Assembly: GCA_001655205.1 (NCBI GenBank)
Contig: LPNZ01009878.1
Span: 62,001 to 126,000 of the forward strand
Source of the DNA: Lenisia limosa
Taxonomy: Eukaryota > Protista > Breviatea
DNA length: 64,000 nt
Direction: 5' to 3'
In this document: one piece after another, positions 532-62,700 of the stretch
Layout: each line of letters opens with the position of its first letter
Position numbering within the stretch: position 1 is the stretch's first letter
Made by a program: the position numbers and the translations under genes
The notes under the pieces: generated by a model
The model's input: only the letters and a program-made list of their open reading frames with translations
Databases searched by the model: none
Told to the model about the DNA's origin: nothing

Positions 532-3539
<3,008 letters not shown>

Positions 3540-4072
3540 TATTTCCTCTTACTTATGAATGATAACTTATATAAGTATTTCAGTTATGTTATTATGCTTA
3601 TTTTTTTTTTTATTTTCTCCACTTTTCAAATTTTCAATTTTCAAAAGCCGTGGATGGATTTTGCCTTCTGTTTATTATAATGCAAACTGATGCATTAATC
3701 TGATCTGAAAGTATATTAATAATAAAAGTTTAACGTGAAATTAAACTCAAATAAAAAGAGCGTGAGAATTTTTTCTCCGCCCGCTGCATCGGATGAATTA
3801 TGTGTTTCCAAAAGGCCGCCATTCATTCGCCACATTTAAGCGTGTTGGTTCTTTGTTGTTTAGTGAAGTTTATTTAGTTTTGCCATTAGTTTTTTAGTAT
3901 ACCACCTACACCTAGATTGACTTTAGTCTCCTTAAACAATCAAATCTTCCACCAGAAGAACCCCCAATTGCTTTCTTCCTTCTGCCTGCCTTGAATTAGT
4001 TTAATCTCAAATAAAATTATAAAATAAGCCAGGAAGAAGCTTAATTTTCAGTTTAGATCGGTATTACAAAAT

Positions 4073-7000
4073 ATGGTAAGATTTGGATTCTCGTGTATCA
4101 TGACCTGCATCAATACTATTTTGGCGGAAATTTAAATACGATAGTTTTTATACATAATTCATGTAAACTTCTGTTTAAAGATTCTCTTGGCTTTAAGTTT
4201 TACGCAGTCGGTAACTATGGATAAAGAGAATTGCCATTCCAATTTTTGATAAATGAAAATGACAATATAGACGTATTTGATTATTATTTTTAATCATCAG
4301 TTTTTCTGAGTGCTTCGCGATCTTTTACCAGATCTTTAGGATGAAGGCCTTACAAGGCGGTCTCCTTCGGACATTCCTCGAAATGACGAACTCAACCAAA
4401 TCTCGTGGGTTCTCGTAACACATTGATCATTGGCACGAGGATGCTCTTACCAAATAATGGAAGTTATAATTTAAAATTTACTTGAAATTTTTGTGAAATT
4501 CGTCATTTTCATAAATAATCCGTAACTGTTCACAAATGTAGCTTTGAGATTTCAGACCCGGAGCAAGAAAAACCTAAGGTTTGTGATGCACATTTCCAAC
4601 TGATTCTCAGCATATTTTTTTATCCTTTTGACCGGTTCAGAATGTTAAAGGCATGCGATGGTTCCACCACCCGGTCGTGATTATGTCAGGCATTACGGCC
4701 TTCTGTCGCATTGTTGGTCTTATAGGTCTGCTGCAAGAAAGGCTCACATTATTCGGTTCGTCTTTTGACAGTTCAGTTCATCTCTTCGGAAAGGATCACA
4801 ATGGAAACTCGACTGGAATTCCAATGGATGTTGTGCCGTTCGCTTTCCTGGTAAGCTCTTCAGTAATTCTTTTCCTTAAAAGTCTTGATGATTGTTTTAA
4901 CTATCTAAGTGGCATCTTTCCGCTCTTTCCGTGCTTACTCTGCTTCTTCTTGCCACTTGGAATGTGAGTTATCATGATTTTATGGTACTAATTCTGATTA
5001 TACTAATTCCTTTATTAGGTTGTGCAACACATCTTTTTCAAGAAGTGGGTTGTGACCATATCAGCAGTTGCACATTCCTGGTGGATCCTTCTTGCCCAAC
5101 TGGACAATGAACAACAGGTTGTTGGGGTACTACATTGTGCGCCATTGTTACGTTCTGAGTGGATTCATTGTATAAATGGGTTCCTTTTATTGTATTTCAA
5201 CGGACCAAGTACTATTGACTCTCTAGCGGCATATGAACCAACACATGACCCTCAACGTTTTTCGTGTTTATGGCAAACCGCAAAACCTCTTTGAAAAAGT
5301 AGGAATGCAAAGCTGGGAGTGATTACATTTGACAGCCATAACCATTATTTAGGATCTTGTTGGCCCTGTCACAGATGATAAGCCGCATCTCATCTTTGCA
5401 TCCCTCCTCATTCTTCTTGGAATAGCAGCAGTCACGTGTACAGCCCTTCTTGCTATCAGGTGAGAAATCCTCCTTGTCACAGCATTATTGGTGAGTTGAT
5501 GTTAACTTCTTGGCAGAAAGAGGCGCCTCCAAGATATTTACATTTCCTGGAAGAAACTTTTGCTTTGCGGCCTCTTTCCCTTCATGTGCCTTGCTTATTT
5601 CCATGGTGTAGCATCTAGCCAAAGAGTGAGTCACTTTCCTTCACTTTATTGTCCCTAACCAATCAGTTGCAACTCGTCAAGCCCGTTGAAGAGTACTGGG
5701 TAGCCTCAATTCTTGGAATTGACAGTATTCCCGTTCCTAAAAATGAGGTTGAAAGGGTGGTATTCCTTCATTCATGACCATTCATTCTTTTCTTCATAAA
5801 TACTTCAGACCCAATCTGCTATTGATCTCAGAAGCCATCAGCCCCATCCCGAAGACACTGTTTGGCCTCTTGGTAAGCTGCAGTCCTTAAGTTAAATCTG
5901 CACATTGACGTATTGACTTATTCAGGTTTGAGATACCCAATGGTGAGATATCGCGTTCCAGGGTACCAGCATCACGACAAACGCCATCATAAAACGATTG
6001 TTCACCATGGCCGGTATGTGATGGAATAGCTTAGCTTTGAAGCAACCTTGATTGTTGTATTTTATTTATAGAGTACTAATCATTTCTTTCTTTATAGTGT
6101 GGAAAGCTCACTTTTCAGTCCAGACCCTGAACACATTGGCTACGACGCAACAATTCAAACAGAGAAAAATGTTGGTTAAAATCGAATACAAAATGTCTTA
6201 TTCATTCTTTAGGGTGTGCTTGAAGACTTGATTCCTGTCTTGTCAGATCTGCCTGATCCCATTCTTGAGCCAGCTGAAGGGTTCCCTGCTCGAGAGTCGT
6301 ATGACCATCCCGACATCGTTTTTTTGAGTGTTGAGAGCCTCCGTGGAGCTGATACTGGTTTCGCCAAGCGAAAGTCTTCGGTTGGTGCTCTTTATGATAC
6401 CTTTTAATGATTGTTAAACCGTACTTATTTCGTCAACACCAACCTCGTATCCTTACCTTGTAGTCAGCAACACCTGAATTGGACACAAGAACTCAAGATG
6501 GCGTGGTTTTTGAGAATTTCGTAACCAACGGTCGTCCCACAAGAGAGGTGTGCTTTGGACATTTGAACTACACCCATTTCCATTTCATCTCATTTTGGTA
6601 GGGATTCTTCAGTTTGCACACAAGCCATTGGCCCCATAGCAATGGCAAGTTCAACGTTTATAATTTCCTGGGCAATGGCTGGGACAGCTTCACGACTCGC
6701 CTGAAAGACTGGGGTTACGGTGGGATAAGTCATATTGGCTGAATTTTAGTCTCTACATTGTTTTCGTAATTTGTTTAGACCGTGTTGCAGTGATGGGTTC
6801 CAACCCTGGATTTGACGGTATTCTGAAGTGGCTTCATCTGTTCTATGACAAGTGAGGGCGGCTTCCATTCCAATTTTCCTATGCCAATGACTTCTTAGAA
6901 TTAATGCACAAACCTCGGCAATTAGCCTCAACTACAAAAAATGGGAAGATTCAAAGGTCTGCTGTCATTATGCCGGGACTTATAATGGGACTTGGACTTA

Positions 7001-9397
7001 CGTTGTTATGGTGCTGAAATTCCAGGTGATCAACGAGATGATTAGTGAGGTCAAGGCCCATGATGCCCGCAACATCGAATTGGAACAGAATGGAAAAAGG
7101 AAAAAAGTGGGTTAACTTTTGAACTTCTGAAGTGTCTTGTTATCTAACTTGGTTATCTAACTTGGTTAATTGATTCAGCCCCTCATGATGTGGATGCACA
7201 CAACGTCTCTTCACCTGCCTTTTTCACTCGATGGTGATGACACAGTCACATCTGATGTTCCCATTGGTAGGCTATTGTTCTAAACATTCGTGTCATTTTT
7301 AGCAACTGAAATGACTTTTTAGACGAACATGACCGCTACCTTCGCGCTCTCAATTACGTTGATAAACACGTTGCGAGAGGTAGGCATGTGGCAAAGTAAC
7401 GTGATGTTGGAATTCCACCCCTTTGATATTACACCAAAGGTCTTGATTACCTTCGAAATGAACGTGCACGAAGGAACAACACCATTGTGATCCTCCTTGG
7501 TGACCACTCCACTCCGATTAGTTCAGATGAAACGGATGTAGGTTTAGATCTGGAAATGTTCCTGAAATATTATACCATGATCATCTGATCTTACCATTTA
7601 GGCTAAATCTGCTGACATGCCATGTGACCGAATGGTCTGGACAAGTGCAGCCTTTTGGGGCCATGAGAAGTACATTGGAAAGCCCAGGAGAGAGACGATC
7701 GCAAGTGAGGGACATGCAACAGTATTTATTTGATCATTCGTTCTTTTGCTTCTGGCTTGACTATTCCATCCAACATTTTGTCATGCCGCAGGTTCCTTAG
7801 TTGATATTGGGCCAACAATATCCGGCTTTGTTGGAGACCTGAGACCAACCGCAGCCTTGGGTTTGGACCTCTTCAGTGACGTCGACCACATCGTGAGGGT
7901 TGTGCCACCACATTAACCATATGACCAATGCAGAAGCGGGAAGCCATGTCAATTCACGGTTCTGGTTTCCGATCAACACGGTTCTCTGAATCCACCTACA
8001 TTCATAGCCCTCACAATGGGCAATCCGCCTGGCTTCTAAGAGACGATCGTGACGAACGTTTTCCTGATAGGTAGGCTTCATATTAGGATTTGTTAAAATG
8101 AACTTTCAAAATTGTAAGTATATATAAATTTCATTAAGGTGGTTCAGTCGCTGTCTTGTTTTTCAAAATAATTTGAAGCCATGTGCAATTTTGAAAAAGA
8201 CCCTTCGGGATAATTTCGTAGGGTAGTTTTTCATATAAAATAGCCTCGGATAGAGAATTTTTAAAATGACCATTTTCCCGACTCCCGAGGTTGTTTCAAT
8301 TTTGAACCTTTTTTGGCTTCTAAATTTTTCCATTTTTTTGGGGTTTAAACATGATATTTGAGGAATTTACATTGTTCTCGTCAAGTACGCACATCCAGTA
8401 CTGTACCATTGTCTAGTTTTTGCACTATTGGACTCATATAGCCTCAGTTAGACATTCCAGGCCTTTTTTACTCATTTTTAAAGTTTGCATGTTAGAGCTA
8501 TTTCATACGAAAAACACCCTGCGGAATTATCCCGAAGGGTCATTTTGAAAACTGCACGTACAGTTTCACTCTATTTACCAAAATATAACGACTAAACCAC
8601 CCCAGCCTATGAGGATTACTTATTCTTGTAGATGTGTTGAAGGTATGAAAGTGCCTCAGAACATGACCCAAGACGTGAAACGGATCGTTGATACCATCAC
8701 ATACGCGTCATATCTTTCCGAACAGGTTTGTCGCTGTTTTGAGTCTCTTCATAACCAACATTGTCCTCTTCTTATTTGACAGGACCGAATGTATCGAAGC
8801 CGATTCTTGGAAGGTTTGTGAGGCATGACAACACACAATATCATATCAAGTTTCTTCATTTCTCCATCCCATGCTAGGGAGGCAGGCAGAAGGCCGACAA
8901 GCCTGGGCAATCTCCCCAACGTCGATCGCGCTGGGGTTAGATCGTTGGAATTTTCGATCTTTAACGAGGAATACCTAGTAATCACAAGTTATCAGATTGG
9001 GCCGAGTTGTAAGGCAAATGATTGGCAATATCTTTCGTGATGGTGTGGACGGCTTCGGGCAGATATAACCTTGTTTATATTTTCGATATATCATAATCAC
9101 CATTGTATGATGCTAGCTTTCCTTTTTCAATTTCTGACTAACCCTTTAGGCCGCTGGATTCATGATGATTCACATGTGATGGTTTCGAAAGTAAGAACCA
9201 GCCACCACCACCACAGAGGCCTCACTGCTGCTTTCTTCATAATGGAATTGGTATGAAAAAAACAGTTCAACCTAAGAGCACCCCTACAACAATCTTGATA
9301 AGTCTTCATTCTTCAGGTTTTTGCCATAGCCACTGGAGTGTTCTTTTGGAAGAGATGGGCAAAAAAGAAGACCATCCAAGCCTTGTGCACCCAATAA
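4073..9397 (+). CDS. LTA-synthase family (LtaS/MdoB-like, alkaline phosphatase/sulfatase superfamily) membrane enzyme, many short exons; 5' end approximate
   Basis: Hydrophobic N-terminal exons (KPHLIFASLLILLGIAAVTCTALLAIR; KKLLLCGLFPFMCLAYFHG), then PDIVFLSVESLRG, ATPELDTRTQDGVVFENFVTNGRPTRE, PLMMWMHTTSLHLPF, RYLRALNYVDKHV, NNTIVILLGDHS, SLVDIGPTISGFVG...ALGLDL. Ends with a hydrophobic VFAIATGVFFWKRWAKKKTIQALCTQ*. Motif order matches the LtaS/MdoB catalytic domain. Confidence 0.8.
8138..8601. mobile_element. Non-autonomous MITE-like element (~464 bp) with ~105 bp imperfect terminal inverted repeats, inside an intron of the LtaS-like gene
   Basis: Left arm GGTGGTTCAGTCG...GTGCAATTTTGAAAAAGACCCTTCGGGATAATTTCGTAGGGTAGTTTTTCATATAAAATAGC (8138-8244) is the near reverse complement of GCTATTTCATACGAAAAACACCCTGCGGAATTATCCCGAAGGGTCATTTTGAAAACTGCAC...CGACTAAACCACC (8496-8601). 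No ORF inside. TTAA on the left flank only. Confidence 0.72.
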
Positions 9398-9678
9398 GCC
9401 CACTATTTCTACTATTATTTCTATTGTTTTTGTTTTTGACTGTTTTTTTGATGGTAAGGTTTTTATTCAATTGTAACTATGATATTAATTTATTACATGG
9501 TGTGATATGAGGGGTTGTTTTCAAAATTAGGGGTATTATGATAATTCTGTTCACCATGAAATACAATTTTTTAAAAGTATATTGGATAAAAATACAATTA
9601 CCATCCACTTTGTATTACACAATATTACATTGGATATAGCACATTCCGTGATCGCTGCACCTGAACAGTCATTTTAGT

Positions 9679-12600
9679 CTATAATTTATTCATTTGACCG
9701 ACAATTATATGAGGTTCCATGTGCTTCCATCCCACATTGTGGCGGCGACGCTCATCAAAGTTGCGTTGTCGCATGGGGGCTTCATTAAAGTGCTCCCGAG
9801 GCTCCCTGAACATTTTAGCTGTCTGAAAAGCTGCAAAAAAGATTCCAGTGACCCTCCCCCCCCCCACACAAAAAAAAGAGTAAAAAAACATACCTTGACA
9901 GCAAATCTCGAGGCACATTAGGGATGAGTTCCCTGCAAAAGAATAATCTCGAGGCACATTAGGGATTAGGGATGAGTTCCCCGCAAAAGACTCAAACAAA
10001 TCTCACAATGATTCTATCTTAGACACGTCCATTAAAACTACAGAGGGAGATTTATTGTATTGCAAGAACTATTATTTCTACCTTTCCCTTTGCAGGAACT
10101 ACTATTTAATACAAATCAAAGTATCTACCTTGGTAAATCTCTAGGTATAGGCATGTCTCTGGGCATATCCCTAAAGAGTTAAACCATCATCGTCATTGAT
10201 TGTCTTTAAGCCACACTTGTACATGCAGAGGTTTCCAGGAAGGCTTGACTTGCATCAAGAATATTAATGGTATACAGAGAAAGTTTGGAATTTCAATACC
10301 AAATCTCCCCGGGAAATTGCTCAAAACATACCTTGGCATATCTCTGGGCATATCTCTAGGTATAGTATCTCTCGGCATATCCCTAAAGAGCATGATTACT
10401 GGTCACAGTAGAGGCCTAATGGAACGAAAACAAAAACTGGTATCCCATTGAAAGTTAAATCACATTTTGCCTGAAATCAGATCCAGAGTTTCACCAAAAC
10501 AGTTCTACTGCTGAGGCCAATACTTAACGTATAAAGAATATCGATGATCTATTACACAGTTCTTTGCTGAGAGATACTCTATAAAACATACCTTGGTAAA
10601 TCTCTTGGTACGGGTATATCTCTGGGCATATCTCTAGGCATGTCTCTAGGCATATCTCTGGGCATATCCCTGCTTGTAAGAAAACGATTACAATCATAAT
10701 ATGCCATAATACATATGTATACTAGTAGTATGATATCCAAAACGATAATATAGCAGATGAAAATTAGAATTATAGGATCACATGTTGCATTACTCCAATC
10801 TTTCTTGGACCAGGGCTAATATGAGGGCTAATATGAGGGATGACTTAAAGCCCAGCATACTGATTCCCTAAATCACGTGAGATGATTCGAGAGAGAGAAT
10901 CTCGTTCATCAGGCCTAAAATCGTAAAGAGCACCGCACAAAATGATCCAAAAAAAGAGTCCACCCACCTAATTGGATGGATGCTTGGTTTGCCGCCCTCA
11001 GTCCTGGAAAGTCGCAAATGGAAACCATTCGCCCAGTCAGTGAAGGACCTGCCTCGTCAGACTTGCCCCAAGGCTTTTTCAAATGAAATGAGGCAAATTA
11101 TCTTGACAATGCTCCCACATCATACCGTAAGTGACTATTGACACTGTCAGTCCATGCCTCAATATCCGTCATCATCTCATTGCGATCGCTGGCCAGGGTT
11201 TTTACGACGTCCTCCTAAACTGTTACTTGAATAAATTACTCACCCATGACAAGGATATACACTCTTACGTGATCAAGTAACAACATAAGAGTATTAACTA
11301 GAGAGGCGACAAAACCCCTCACCTTGAGCTCTTCAAACTCCTCCTTGAACTTTGAAGACTTCTCAGCCAAGGCGTCCTCGATGACCGAATTGGAAAGGGC
11401 TACTGGGTCCTAAATGAAAGTAACTCTCTTTCATTCCTTGAACAAATCATCATGTCAAATAGGTTGCACGAGGACGCTTACTTTGCTATGAGACGCCCTT
11501 AGTTTCTTGAGGCTGTTTTGGATCTTGGGAAGTAGGTCCCTACATGAGTCATGTCATGTCCAAAGGCAGTGAGAAGCACAGTAATTGACGCACCTGTGCT
11601 GTGCCACTTCAGTGTGAAGCATTGTGATGTCGGAGATGAGCCGTTGAAACTTCTTGGCTGTCTGCTTCTCATGAAGTTCCAACCTGGTCTATAGTGTAAA
11701 GACTGAGACAAGATAAGACACATCTTTCACTAGCCCGGCAAAATGAAAGCACCAACCTGAAGTTTCATGATGAAGCGCGCAGAGCGGGGGTCATTGTCCT
11801 GACTTCTCTGTTTGATTGCGTTCAGCCTCGCTTGTCTGTCTTTCGTGGTACCTGCTAATTTTTGAGAGCAAAAACATTAAATAAAATCTTGGGAAACAAA
11901 TTAATACATTGGGATACGGGGGGGTATAGCCTGACCAAAGCTGGTGGCGTCCAACCTTTTTGCGCTTCAGAGGAGACCGATGGGGCTTGATTTCTGAAAT
12001 ATGTATAAAAAAAAAACTTCTTTCAGGAAAAGAAACCAGGTAGTTGTAAAAAACTGGAGTGGGCAAAAATAATATATGGCAAACCACCTCACGTTTTTGA
12101 GGGGGTACTGACAGGTGTAGAGGGGGCGGGAGCGGACTAAACCGTCAGAGAAGACTCTCGGGATAATCATTAACAGTACCTTGGAGGGTGTGGAGGGGGC
12201 TTCGGAAGGCGGAATGTACACTTCTGACGGACTATCTGGCGGATCGTTTCCCTCTGCCAACTGTGAGGGGTTTTTCCAGACAAACAATTGCATATTAGGT
12301 TCACTTGGTATCATGCCGGCCTCGAACTCACCCGTTGGCCATGAAACCGGGTTCTTAAGAGGGTTTGGCGGGAGTGGAGGGATATCAGCCTGAGTGGTTC
12401 AATACACTTGGACTGATATGAGGAATTCTAACATAGCAAGTGCGCATCTTGTGGATATGGTCAAATGAATTTAAATCCCAAACAATATTAAATTCTTCTT
12501 GTTGAAATACTCTACAAAGTTGATCAAAGCCATCAAATCATATTGCAAAGAACATCTACTATGATGAAAGAGGGGCGATAGAAGGTTGAGTTCGTCCAAA

Positions 12601-59700: not shown

Positions 59701-62700
59701 ATGTTGAGCATATCGGCTCAACTTTGTTTCCTTCCGGGGCAACTCCAAAGACTGTTGTTGATGGCTCTGTCAAGGTAACATTGTGTTAATTTTTGCCGAA
59801 GAGTTTCATTTATCCTTCTTTAATCGAAAAACAGGTTCATACTACTGATGGCGAAGTCTCAGCAGCCACGTTGACCTCGCACTCCGCCTTGGCCCAAGCT
59901 TCCAGTGGTGACACTACAAACGCTGTATGTTCAAGCATATCGAATCCACATCTCAATACTCAATACTCATTCAGTGTTTTGGTGAAGATTAAGAATAGAT
60001 CCCTTCATCTTTCCAGGTTATGCAAGAAGCCTTTTCGCAAGCTGTCGTACTCAATCGCCTACAAAATGCTTGGGAAATTGCGGTAGATAATCAACACTTT
60101 CTGTTCCGTTCTCACTCTTTAGGTGATGACCAATGATGGAGATCAGTTTGCTGATTTGGGAAGAGCAGCTCTTGAGTGTTTGAATGTTGAACTTGCCACT
60201 CGAGCTTTCAGGTGAGGATAATTGCGCTACTTACCTCTTTAGACGGCTCGGAGATGCAGGAATGGTTCTTGCGTTGGAGGAACTTGTGCTGGTGGAAAAC
60301 CAAAACCTTCTATCAGGGCATTTGGCCCAGCTGATGGGCGAATTCAACCTTGCTCAGGTATAAGTTTTCAAGTATCCTATCAATCAAAATAAGGACTTTT
60401 TTTATGACAATTACTGAGGAGGAATGTTGTGTTAATAAGATGATACTATAAATAAATATACCTTAGCAACGTGCTCGAGTTGACGGCTTTGGTTAGATAC
60501 TTCCTTTATTATTTCTAGTTTCTACCGAATTATTATTTTCTCTGCTAACTGTTTAAGGAGCGATTCTTGCAGTCAGACCATCCGATTGAAGCGTTAAACA
60601 TGAGAAGAAACCTGCACCAATGGGATACTGCTCTCTCCCTGGCAAACAGACTTGAGGTTTTTTTTGTTAATTGTAACGCAAGCCTGAATCGGTTGCATCC
60701 ATTGCCCACTCGTATGGTCAGCAGTTGGAGTTCAAAGGGGACTATTCGCAAGCCAAGGCTATGTATGAGAAGGCTGAGCAGACCAATGACTCTGGTGTGC
60801 GACGTCAGTCTCAGGAAGGCATCGCTCGCTGCATGTACCAAATGGGCGACCAGGTAAATACATCGTCGCCCTTCTCACCTCATAGGCTCGTGGCTCAAAC
60901 ATCGTAAACAAGTTGAAATCCCTCCAGCTGTACAAGGAGTGTGCTGCTATCTTAGAGTCCTCTAACCTTCTTGGTGATGCTGCCTTACTCTATGAAAAAG
61001 GCGAAGCCTGGGATAAGGCTGTCGCCATTTACCTCAAAACCAAGTCCTATGGAAAGGTAGAAGAATTCTTCACTTTCTCATATGTTTCAGGCCGAGTCTC
61101 TCATGGAGTTTGTTTCTGCCCCGAGACTGCATGCTCAATTCGCCAAGGTTTGCTCACCCTAAATATTGTGTTTTTTTCTTCTTCAGTTATGTACAACTTT
61201 TATAATGCTACAACAGTTTCTAGTGATGAGCAGCAATAGTCAGGATTTATGACTCTTCAGGCGATGGAATCACAAGGGAAATTCAAAGAAGCTGAATTCG
61301 CCTACACGAAAGCCAAAGAAACAGACTCAATCGTCCGTCTCAACCTTCAAAACTTGGACAACCCTGAAAAGGCGTTCGACTTGGTGCGGACAACGAACTC
61401 GGCAGAAGGCGGTATGGTTCTGATGATTATCCTCGAAAACTGACGCAAATTCAGCTCGTCTTGTTGCAGAGTACTGTCTTGATGGACACAACCCCCCAGC
61501 TGGTATTGAGTTCCTCCTCATGGCGGGCTTGCGTGAGGAAGCCTTCGACCTTGCTCAGTCCACCGGGCACTTGGAGGAGTATGCTAAGCAGCTTGGAGAC
61601 CACGGCACTCAGAAGGACCACCAAGAACTCGCAAAGGCTTTCGAGGGCCAGGTAGGTGCTTGAATGAGATTCTTGACAATACAGGGTGATCTGGTCAACG
61701 CGGCTGATTTCTATGTTGCTTATGGTCAGTACCAGAGAGGCTTACGGTAAGCCCTTCAGAAGTTTCCATTACTTTTTAGCTTGTATTTGCGCTCAGGCTC
61801 TGATATTAGTATCACTAAGGCAATTGAAGTCGTTGGGAAAGCAAACTCAGATGTGCTCACTAACCAAGTTATCGACTTCCTCATGGGAGAAGTTAGTTTT
61901 AGTTCACAGCTTCTTTACTGCTTAGCATGATAACCAGGCCAAGGACCCCAGGCACGTGTATAGCCTCTACGTTGCTCTTGGAAACTATTTACAAGCTGCA
62001 CATACATCTGTCTTGATTGCTGGTCAAGAGCAATCCGCTGGAAAATACAAGGTTATTGTTTCTTTTTACGCAGGAAGCACATAAGATCCTCCTTGATTCA
62101 TACCTGGATTTGCAGCAGCGTGGAGTCCGAGTGCCCACAGAGCTCAACCAAGCTCTCTGTCTTCTTCATTCGTACATTCGTGTCAAAGTTAGTGCCAAAA
62201 CCTTCCACAGTTGACATTCCAGACCCTTGTCAAGGCTGGTGACCATGAATCAGGTGCAAGAATGTTGATTCGTGTAGCAAACAACATTTCCAAGGTAAAA
62301 AAACTGGTACATTTATTTCCTAGTTCCCTGCGCACATTGTTCCCATTTTGACCTCCACTGTAATTGAGTGTCAACGTTCTGGTTTGAAAAGAGTAGGGCC
62401 TTCATGTAGTCTTTAATTCTCTAGTCTGCGTTTGATTACGCTTCAATGCTTATGAGAACTGAGTATCGCTCTCAGATTGACGCCAAATATCGAAGGAAAA
62501 TTGAGGCCCTTGTTAGGTTAGTTATAATGAAATTAATTACCCTGCATGTATTCTTAAATGTCAAACATATTTGATATTTTTTTACTTCATCTTACTCTGT
62601 AGACGACCTGATAAGGAAGAAGAGGAAGAACCGACGAACCCCTGTCCTTTCTGTGATTTCGAGCTTCCTATCACTGCAACAGATTGTCCAATTTGCAAAA

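Follow-up and report, generated by a model that had tools for sequence, protein, structure and literature searches.

Can a eukaryote own an enzyme of the family that bacteria use to modify their envelope with phospholipid head groups? The question is raised by a locus of the breviate protist Lenisia limosa (NCBI GenBank assembly GCA_001655205.1, contig LPNZ01009878.1). The window, by which we mean the whole stretch of DNA analysed, comprises 64,000 nucleotides (positions 62,001 to 126,000 of the contig, forward strand), and the coordinates given below are those of the window, on its plus strand unless stated. LtaS/OpgB enzymes are known as bacterial envelope enzymes and as drug targets; the head groups they transfer go to teichoic acids, periplasmic glucans and wall polysaccharides. 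An earlier note, made from the letters of the sequence, had placed an intron-rich gene for such an enzyme at 4073–9397. The explanation that we find reasonably probable, taken as a whole, is that the locus codes for an expressed protist membrane enzyme of the LtaS/OpgB family, working by head-group transfer chemistry. New here is that a known family of enzymes gains a eukaryotic member, whose architecture is slightly altered.

We must begin with the gene itself. Between 4653 and 9397, 27 coding exons join in consistent phase into 2,376 nt, that is 791 codons followed by a TAA at 9395–9397; the spliced model holds no internal stop, and all 26 coding introns are of the GT-AG type. Twenty-four of these introns measure 41 to 109 nt, the remaining two 561 and 336 nt, and the G+C content of the locus (0.39–0.44) is like that of the remainder of the window. 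Splicing is seen in contigs from one public polyA RNA library (2016), the DNA run of the same study giving the unspliced locus, with none of the RNA-seen joints present in it. Eleven of the 26 coding introns are confirmed in this way. Ten of them display the exact predicted junction (4725/4777, 6719/6779, 6851/6899, 6956/7026, 7106/7179, 7704/7792, 8070/8632, 8725/8783, 8813/9150 and 9250/9317), while the eleventh is recovered via a loose end, the RNA contig preceding 7602 with the last 17 nt of exon 20. A further intron, with GT..AG ends and an RNA junction at 4578/4641, lies in the 5′ untranslated region (UTR). An independent ENA assembly (ERZ3820729, NODE_68) is identical to the window from 2216 to 10407. 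Might the locus nevertheless be non-functional: a pseudogene in decay, a contig from a contaminant, or open reading frames (ORFs) lined up by chance? The RNA depth at the gene is low (2–9) and exons 3–13 are bare of RNA, which would suit such a view. But a phase held over 27 exons with no stop in 2,376 nt, polyA RNA spliced exactly as predicted, invariant catalytic residues that are retained, the same DNA in an independent assembly and a eukaryotic housekeeping gene next door make it extremely improbable. The locus is a real, expressed nuclear gene of L. limosa.

To which family does its product belong? Homology was searched exon by exon, residue numbers, frame and hydropathy being taken from the joined model. 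The profile that we used was made of 12 bacterial proteins of COG1368 from six bacterial phyla: Escherichia coli OpgB and the products of 11 plasmid genes, annotated either ‘LTA synthase family’ (LTA, lipoteichoic acid) or ‘alkaline phosphatase family’. A word search for OpgB had listed 120 near-identical enterobacterial sequences, too uniform for a profile, and the diverse plasmid members were therefore used. The Bacillus thuringiensis member of the set matches the LtaS structures 2W8D, 4UOO and 2W5Q with E-values of 1e-111 to 1e-123 (4e-123 for 2W8D), and the Gram-negative type is represented by the Vibrio protein 3LXQ.

Run against the 3,293 stop-free six-frame segments of the window, this profile puts three exons of the gene at the top, namely 13, 22 and 20, and in the gene exons 13, 20 and 22 stand in the order of the profile. 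Exon 13 (6464–6547), which reads TPELD...G..FENF...GRPTRE, is the best segment of the window, with 8.8–10.2 bits; exon 22 (7792–7892), where SLVDIGPTISGFVG...GLDLF corresponds to the family block QiDiaPTlL...fGrDl, is the second best. The best placements rise monotonically along the gene, exons 12, 13, 14, 18, 19, 20 and 22 falling at columns 283, 307, 390, 442, 467, 494 and 542. Chained colinearly, exons 12–24 score 16.3 bits, where shuffled residues average 0.06 and reach 5.2 at most (0 of 2000 shuffles come up to the observed value), and nine of the 12 exons come in order, against seven at most in the shuffles. When the profile is split into disjoint halves, the seven Gram-negative-type proteins give 14.1 bits and the other five 17.2; with both halves scoring, the signal is one of the whole family and of no single subgroup. 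No subgroup stands out as closest, identity within the conserved blocks being 22–35% to all twelve members.

An independent method, hhalign, places exons 12, 13, 14, 15, 18, 20 and 22 at columns 286, 313, 368, 387, 447, 502 and 551, with P-values of 0.23, 2e-4 (more exactly 2.1e-4), 0.11, 0.37, 0.043, 0.0066 and 0.002. The offsets between column and residue (45, 46, 46, 46, 51, 52 and 61) describe one diagonal; combined by Fisher's method, the P-values give 8.5e-7, and the probability of finding this order by chance is 1/5040. Exon 12 (6213–6380) supplies the first predicted strand of the catalytic domain, DIVFLSVESL, placed by the profile at the family block NvVlvllESl. Exon 14 (6602–6719, its 3′ end fixed by the RNA joint with 6779) continues the putative nucleophile helix with GFFSLHTSHWP and then runs to ...LKDWGY, which hhalign lays on the family L..GY block. 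Exons 15–17 (6779–6851, 6899–6956 and 7026–7106), bounded by four RNA joints, make the middle of the catalytic domain, exon 15 falling at the family FD block. Exon 18 (7179–7266, joined to 7106 in RNA) carries TTSLHLPF, read as the S-x-H-x-P-[FY] block. It is followed by exon 19 (7323–7379), defined by its AG/GT borders and phase and placed colinearly at columns 467–479, and by exon 20 (7440–7537), with NNTIVILLGDHS, whose end is seen in the RNA loose end. Exon 21 (7602–7704) is an RNA contig of its own, joined to 7792. The C-terminal part of the ectodomain lies in exon 23 (7934–8070, by phase and the RNA joint 8070/8632), and its end in exons 24 and 25 (8632–8725 and 8783–8813, all their joints in RNA).

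The Lenisia protein is supported as a eukaryotic member of the LtaS/OpgB (MdoB) family, COG1368, of the alkaline-phosphatase superfamily and predicted sulfatase fold, and from its sequence it is probably a phospholipid-head-group transferase. The likeness to LtaS/MdoB claimed by the earlier note is borne out by this significant colinear match, exon by exon, with the profiles of EptA/MCR and BcsG silent.

The catalytic residues can be followed one by one. The earlier note had read four motifs in a set order, and it read them correctly: VESLRG in exon 12, NGRPTRE in exon 13, TTSLHLPF in exon 18 and LLGDHS in exon 20 succeed one another on the plus strand, NGRPTRE closing exon 13 and exon 14 carrying on as GFFSLHTSHWP. 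The residues at stake are Glu342 (codon 6333–6335), the putative nucleophile Thr383 (6539–6541), His507 (7212–7214) and the pair Asp565-His566 (7502–7507). Glu342, Asp565 and His566 stand in invariant or near-invariant columns of the family, and T-S-L-H-L-P-F aligns to the family S-N-H-x-P-[YF], which puts His507 in the block of Staphylococcus aureus His416. In the S. aureus ectodomain (eLtaS) Mn2+ is held by Glu255, Thr300, Asp475 and His476, while His347, Arg356 and His416 bind glycerol phosphate (PMC9131456). Each of the four metal ligands, and likewise His416, has its counterpart in the Lenisia protein. The spacings between Glu, Thr, His and Asp-His are also similar, with 41, 124 and 58 residues in Lenisia and 45, 116 and 59 in S. 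aureus LtaS. In five reliably aligned blocks there are 20 near-invariant columns (with one and the same residue in ten or more of the 12 proteins); the Lenisia protein matches 15 of them, including E-S of the first strand, T-P, the H and P of S-x-H-x-P-F, D-H, and the D of QxDxxPT.

Other branches of the superfamily had to be weighed against this assignment. A phosphoethanolamine transferase of EptA/MCR/PIG type, be it of the bacterial EptA family or one of the vertically inherited eukaryotic glycosylphosphatidylinositol transferases, would have some features in common with the protein: EptA has five N-terminal helices, a sulfatase-fold domain and a Thr nucleophile, and its E-[ST]-x-R resembles ESLR. 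A profile of eight such proteins (EptA, EptB, EptC, MCR-1, MCR-3, MCR-8 and two plasmid phosphoethanolamine transferases), however, gives 0.4 bits, a value equalled by 13 of 300 shuffles, and no colinear order. The model made from the single E. coli BcsG sequence, which is of low power, gives 1.1 bits (12 of 300 shuffles as good) and again no order, whereas the S-x-H-x-P-F and GDH blocks match the LtaS/OpgB pattern. PIG-N, PIG-O and PIG-G have their catalytic domain first and many helices after it. In the Lenisia protein this order is reversed: the helices come first and one helix follows the catalytic domain. A transferase of this type is very unlikely here. The earlier note had set the layout apart from that of PIG-N/O/G and of the Cys/Ser sulfatases; for PIG-N/O/G the comparison, made by architecture, agrees with this, and for the Cys/Ser sulfatases the motif is absent.

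A formylglycine-type (aryl)sulfatase, or a catalytically dead relative, calls for a separate comment, as a profile of six arylsulfatases does respond to the gene: 6.4 bits, matched by 0 of 300 shuffles, with 8 of 10 exons in order, and P-T-R-x-x-F-F-S loosely recalls the sulfatase signature. This weak but colinear signal is what is expected as an echo of the common sulfatase fold, and it stays well under the 16.3 bits of the LTA-synthase profile. Neither Cys/Ser-x-Pro-x-Arg nor D-D of the sulfatases is present: the sequence reads G-R-P-T-R and V-E-S, so that the Cys/Ser position is taken by Gly (if PTR is laid on PSR) or by Thr (by spacing), and the first motif is E-S. Furthermore, an N-terminal domain of five helices is not known as a sulfatase feature. 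This identity is highly improbable.

How would the LtaS/OpgB-type protein sit in the membrane? Hydropathy peaks at residues 7–25, 46–64, 77–95 (weaker), 141–159, 174–192 and 756–774. Exon 1 (4641–4725), delimited by RNA joints, frame and hydropathy, has a 12-nt leader, the coding sequence from the ATG at 4653 and helix 1. Exon 2 (4777–4850; RNA joint 4725/4777, phase) forms an outside loop with the sequon N35 and the start of helix 2, which is continued in exon 3 (4910–4963). Helix 3, with the weaker hydropathy peak of 1.41, is in exon 4 (5019–5117), a loop in exon 5 (5227–5298), helix 4 in exon 6 (5353–5459), and exon 7 (5517–5625) encodes a predicted cytoplasmic loop, IRKRRLQDIYISWK, and helix 5. 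Exons 8–11 (5667–5756, 5809–5872, 5926–6013 and 6098–6170) make the long linker from helix 5 to the catalytic domain; from exon 3 to exon 11 the borders are set by AG/GT and phase. At the other end, exon 26 (9150–9250; RNA joints 8813/9150 and 9250/9317) encodes a His-rich stalk (HHHH) and the first half of a C-terminal helix, with its hydropathy peak at 756–774. Exon 27 (9317–9397; RNA joint 9250/9317) encodes its second half, the basic tail RWAKKKTIQALCTQ and the TAA. The loop at residues 159–172, with five Lys or Arg to one Asp or Glu, and the 14-residue tail, with four to none, are strongly basic. From the positive-inside rule the N-terminus, this loop and the tail are predicted to be cytoplasmic, and residues 194–755 outside or luminal, a topology that puts the N-x-S/T site N35 in an outside loop. 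This agrees with the layout of LtaS/OpgB, apart from two additions: helix 5 is followed by a linker of about 135 residues, and the C-terminus provides a second membrane anchor. The N-terminal membrane exons of the earlier note are found as five predicted helices; the several hydrophobic segments that it saw at the C-terminus reduce to one helix (about residues 756–777), spread over exons 26 and 27.

A possible course of the reaction can be drawn from these features. The five N-terminal helices would place the catalytic domain at the outer or luminal face of the membrane, where a metal ion held by Glu342, Thr383, Asp565 and His566 would activate Thr383. By attack of this residue on the phosphodiester in a glycerophospholipid of the membrane, diacylglycerol would be released and a phospho-alcohol-Thr intermediate would form. 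The acceptor of the head group might then be a hydroxyl on a glycan or glycolipid, either of the surface or secretory. The C-terminal helix and the basic tail would keep the domain tied to the membrane at both ends.

Several observations weigh against this picture, and they are best considered together. Activity, donor, acceptor and cellular location are all read purely from the chemistry of the family, as given in PMC3249071 and in bioRxiv 10.64898/2026.09.23.753746. Exons 3–13 have no RNA coverage and are based on splice signals and phase, together with homology for exons 12 and 13. Scans of the ten catalytic exons, one by one, against Pfam and NCBIfam brought none to threshold, the lone weak match being that of the GDH exon 20 to Metalloenzyme/iPGM (E = 0.1); the curated libraries need longer queries than a single exon provides. 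Sequence searches of the PDB with exons 12 and 20 matched no solved structure, and pairwise tblastn of E. coli OpgB against the locus gave noise only. An attempt to lay the exons on OpgB with MAFFT scattered them, and that alignment was dropped. Exon-sized queries retrieved no relative, eukaryotic or bacterial, and no orthologue is known.

The active site itself adds two points to this list. Thr383 stands just beyond the aligned block and was placed by hand, to within one column, in a region whose length is not the same in LtaS and in the Gram-negative type. It falls on Thr300 of LtaS because the stretch bounded by the T of T-x-G and by the Pro at the end of the nucleophile helix counts 19 residues in LtaS and in the Lenisia protein alike; the Gram-negative type is one residue shorter there and has Ser at the nucleophile position. 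The second point concerns the pocket. With the exons aligned by hand to the family alignment, His347 and Arg356 of LtaS are replaced by Met and Ile, the site reading V-M-G-S-N-P-G-F-D-G-I where LtaS has F-H-x-N-x-x-x-F-W-N-R; F-D-G resembles the F-D-N of the Gram-negative type, unlike F-W-N-R of LtaS. Judged by its residues, the catalytic machinery is intact, and the pocket that gives LtaS its glycerol-phosphate specificity is not conserved. As His347 and Arg356 are not kept, the head group need not be phosphoglycerol.

It is here that the main rival finds its place. A protein of the same fold and family might be a hydrolase (phospholipase-C-like, phosphodiesterase or phosphomonoesterase), releasing head groups or scavenging phosphate at the cell surface. 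The metal site and the nucleophile suit hydrolysis as well as transfer, the alkaline-phosphatase superfamily is catalytically promiscuous (PMC3249071), and the residues with which LtaS binds glycerol phosphate and lines its growing chain are not conserved. Against this, lipid-head-group transferases are built in this way, with a membrane-embedded N-terminal domain ahead of the catalytic one (bioRxiv 10.64898/2026.09.23.753746), and five helices and a second anchor would be superfluous for a scavenging hydrolase. We consider hydrolysis rather unlikely as the function of the protein.

For the transferase that we favour, which of the known enzymes would be the best model? LtaS itself (S. aureus 2W5Q, Bacillus subtilis 2W8D) also has about five N-terminal helices followed by an outside-facing sulfatase-fold domain, with the Glu, Thr, S-x-H-x-P-F and Gly-Asp-His elements in the same order and at near-equal spacing, and with the same length from T-x-G to Pro. 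It differs in several respects: it lacks the C-terminal membrane helix and cytoplasmic tail, has His347 and Arg356 where the Lenisia protein has Met and Ile, and goes without the linker of about 135 residues and the 26 introns of its eukaryotic counterpart, to which it is just about 32–35% identical inside the five conserved blocks. OpgB (MdoB), the phosphoglycerol transferase I of E. coli, comes under the common profile with the same motif order (GESL, TPEL...G, T-H-H-P, S-D-H). Its reaction is a single transfer, in which the head group of a phospholipid goes to a soluble glucan, and this makes it a better functional model than a polymerase. It has, however, an N-terminal domain of its own (PF22895) and a long C-terminal domain, both lacking in the Lenisia protein, and shows no similarity by tblastn. 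The Gram-negative ‘LTA synthase family’ proteins (Vibrio VP1736, PDB 3LXQ, function unknown) have in common with the Lenisia protein G-x-x-[ST]-x-x-G after TP..L..G..F, and F-D-[NG] where LtaS has F-W-N-R; seven of them, as said, suffice for 14.1 bits. They are bacterial proteins with a short linker and no C-terminal anchor.

A further comparison, by description only, is with glycerol-phosphate transferases of the GacH type. GacH itself we take to be an LtaS homolog. Enzymes of this type are bacterial, and they put single phospho-alcohol groups onto a surface glycan, which is the role proposed here for the Lenisia protein. Streptococcal rhamnose polysaccharides are decorated in this manner, and the term ‘LtaS homolog’ is used in the corresponding report (bioRxiv 10.1101/337519). 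A side observation may be recorded on bacterial gene order. On three bacterial plasmids a diacylglycerol kinase gene directly adjoins a gene of the LTA-synthase family or of MCR-3, an arrangement that fits recycling of the diacylglycerol released by head-group transferases; the Lenisia window has no diacylglycerol kinase neighbour.

Where does the gene come from? Intron density and base composition make it look native. The description ‘old, fully intronised’ given in the earlier note is compatible with 26 introns and a G+C content like that of the neighbourhood, though the gene may also have been inherited vertically from an early eukaryote. Exon 12 (56 amino acids), searched exhaustively against 1.84 billion representatives, returned the ORF fragment of its own contig and two false positives among repeat proteins; as only some 25 residues of this exon are conserved, the result is weak evidence against close relatives. 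With the same exon, a feature search of the ESM Atlas yielded no usable match, and a scan of JGI metagenomes matched 600 patterns, of which 0 were confirmed. A near-identical bacterial gene was not found, which makes recent transfer or contamination unlikely. Lateral transfer from bacteria would be a reasonable hypothesis. Its more specific form, in which an LtaS/OpgB gene acquired laterally in ancient times would now equip the protist's own surface glycoconjugates with phosphoglycerol or a different phospho-alcohol, which might form short chains like those of teichoic acid, appears distinctly improbable to us.

What would such an enzyme mean for a eukaryotic cell? That a free-living anaerobe among the protists has an intact, expressed and fully intronised copy is a pointer to eukaryotic cell-surface decoration with material derived from phospholipids, and the gene suggests that head groups are moved onto surface sugars as they are in bacteria. 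To our knowledge, nobody has looked for such decoration in eukaryotes. A full-text search of the open literature found no paper on a eukaryotic enzyme of the LtaS/OpgB family, which is not proof of absence. If the specific reading given above were true, a eukaryote would have an anionic coat in the bacterial style, with possible consequences for how its bacterial epibionts attach; with bacterial ancestry, this would be one more old transfer turned into an ordinary nuclear gene. If, on the other hand, relatives exist across eukaryotes, an overlooked eukaryotic branch of the LtaS/OpgB family would come to light. In practical terms the locus provides a concrete protein for expression and assay; it adds modestly to a family already known, and involves no new principle.

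Some features of the gene model deserve mention. The earlier note had made the gene start at 4073, and this had to be given up: a start there, leading through the exon 4556–4578 into 4641, goes out of frame and meets a stop, and the frame together with the RNA junction 4578/4641 favours the ATG at 4653, the most likely coding start. The 3′ part of the 5′-UTR exon lies at 4544–4578. It is known from the RNA joint of 4578 with 4641: before 4578 the RNA contig continues unbroken for 35 nt or more. A short upstream ORF of 12 codons (window 4641–4680) begins at another ATG of the spliced leader, at 4642, and overlaps the main ATG in a different frame; it may be a mild brake on translation. The usual donors are GTAAG or GTGAG, and weaker ones occur where RNA coverage is missing: GTTGGT after exons 11 and 12 (6171–6176 and 6381–6386) and GTTGTT after exon 4. 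On NODE_68 of ERZ3820729 the gene calls are of prokaryotic style, and several of the products (169 and 270 amino acids) span stop codons and introns; as public calls run through stops and introns, the gene has no usable public protein model.

The two long introns carry elements of their own. Intron 25 (8814–9149, 336 nt, skipped in RNA) contains a fragment resembling eukaryotic small-subunit ribosomal RNA (rRNA) at 8813–9007: Rfam model RF01960 gives 39.3 bits (E = 3.6e-8, model positions 1173–1646), under the gathering score of 50. The depth of the DNA contigs rises there from about 41 to 1,183–12,566, with a high-copy stretch at about 9037–9076, and many contigs break at 9036–9076. The fragment looks like a slightly diverged piece of ribosomal DNA inserted in the intron. 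An assembly join through ribosomal DNA is less likely, because RNA splices across and the independent ENA assembly agrees. A candidate exon within 8814–9149 (about 8880–8940) was rejected: RNA splices over this stretch, which has the Rfam similarity to rRNA. Intron 23 (8071–8631, 561 nt, delimited by RNA) harbours an inverted repeat, with arms of 48 nt at 8183–8230 and 8510–8557 that are 85% complementary and 279 nt apart. DNA depth over the repeat is 7–8 times that of its flanks, with contig joints on opposite strands, and it looks like a repeated element of the MITE (miniature inverted-repeat transposable element) kind inserted in the intron. Finally, upstream of the gene and on the minus strand, an ORF piece at about 2951–3238 matches the C-terminal OB domain of proteasomal ATPases (PF16450, E = 4e-8); by this domain, the neighbour is a gene for a predicted Rpt-type subunit of the 26S proteasome.

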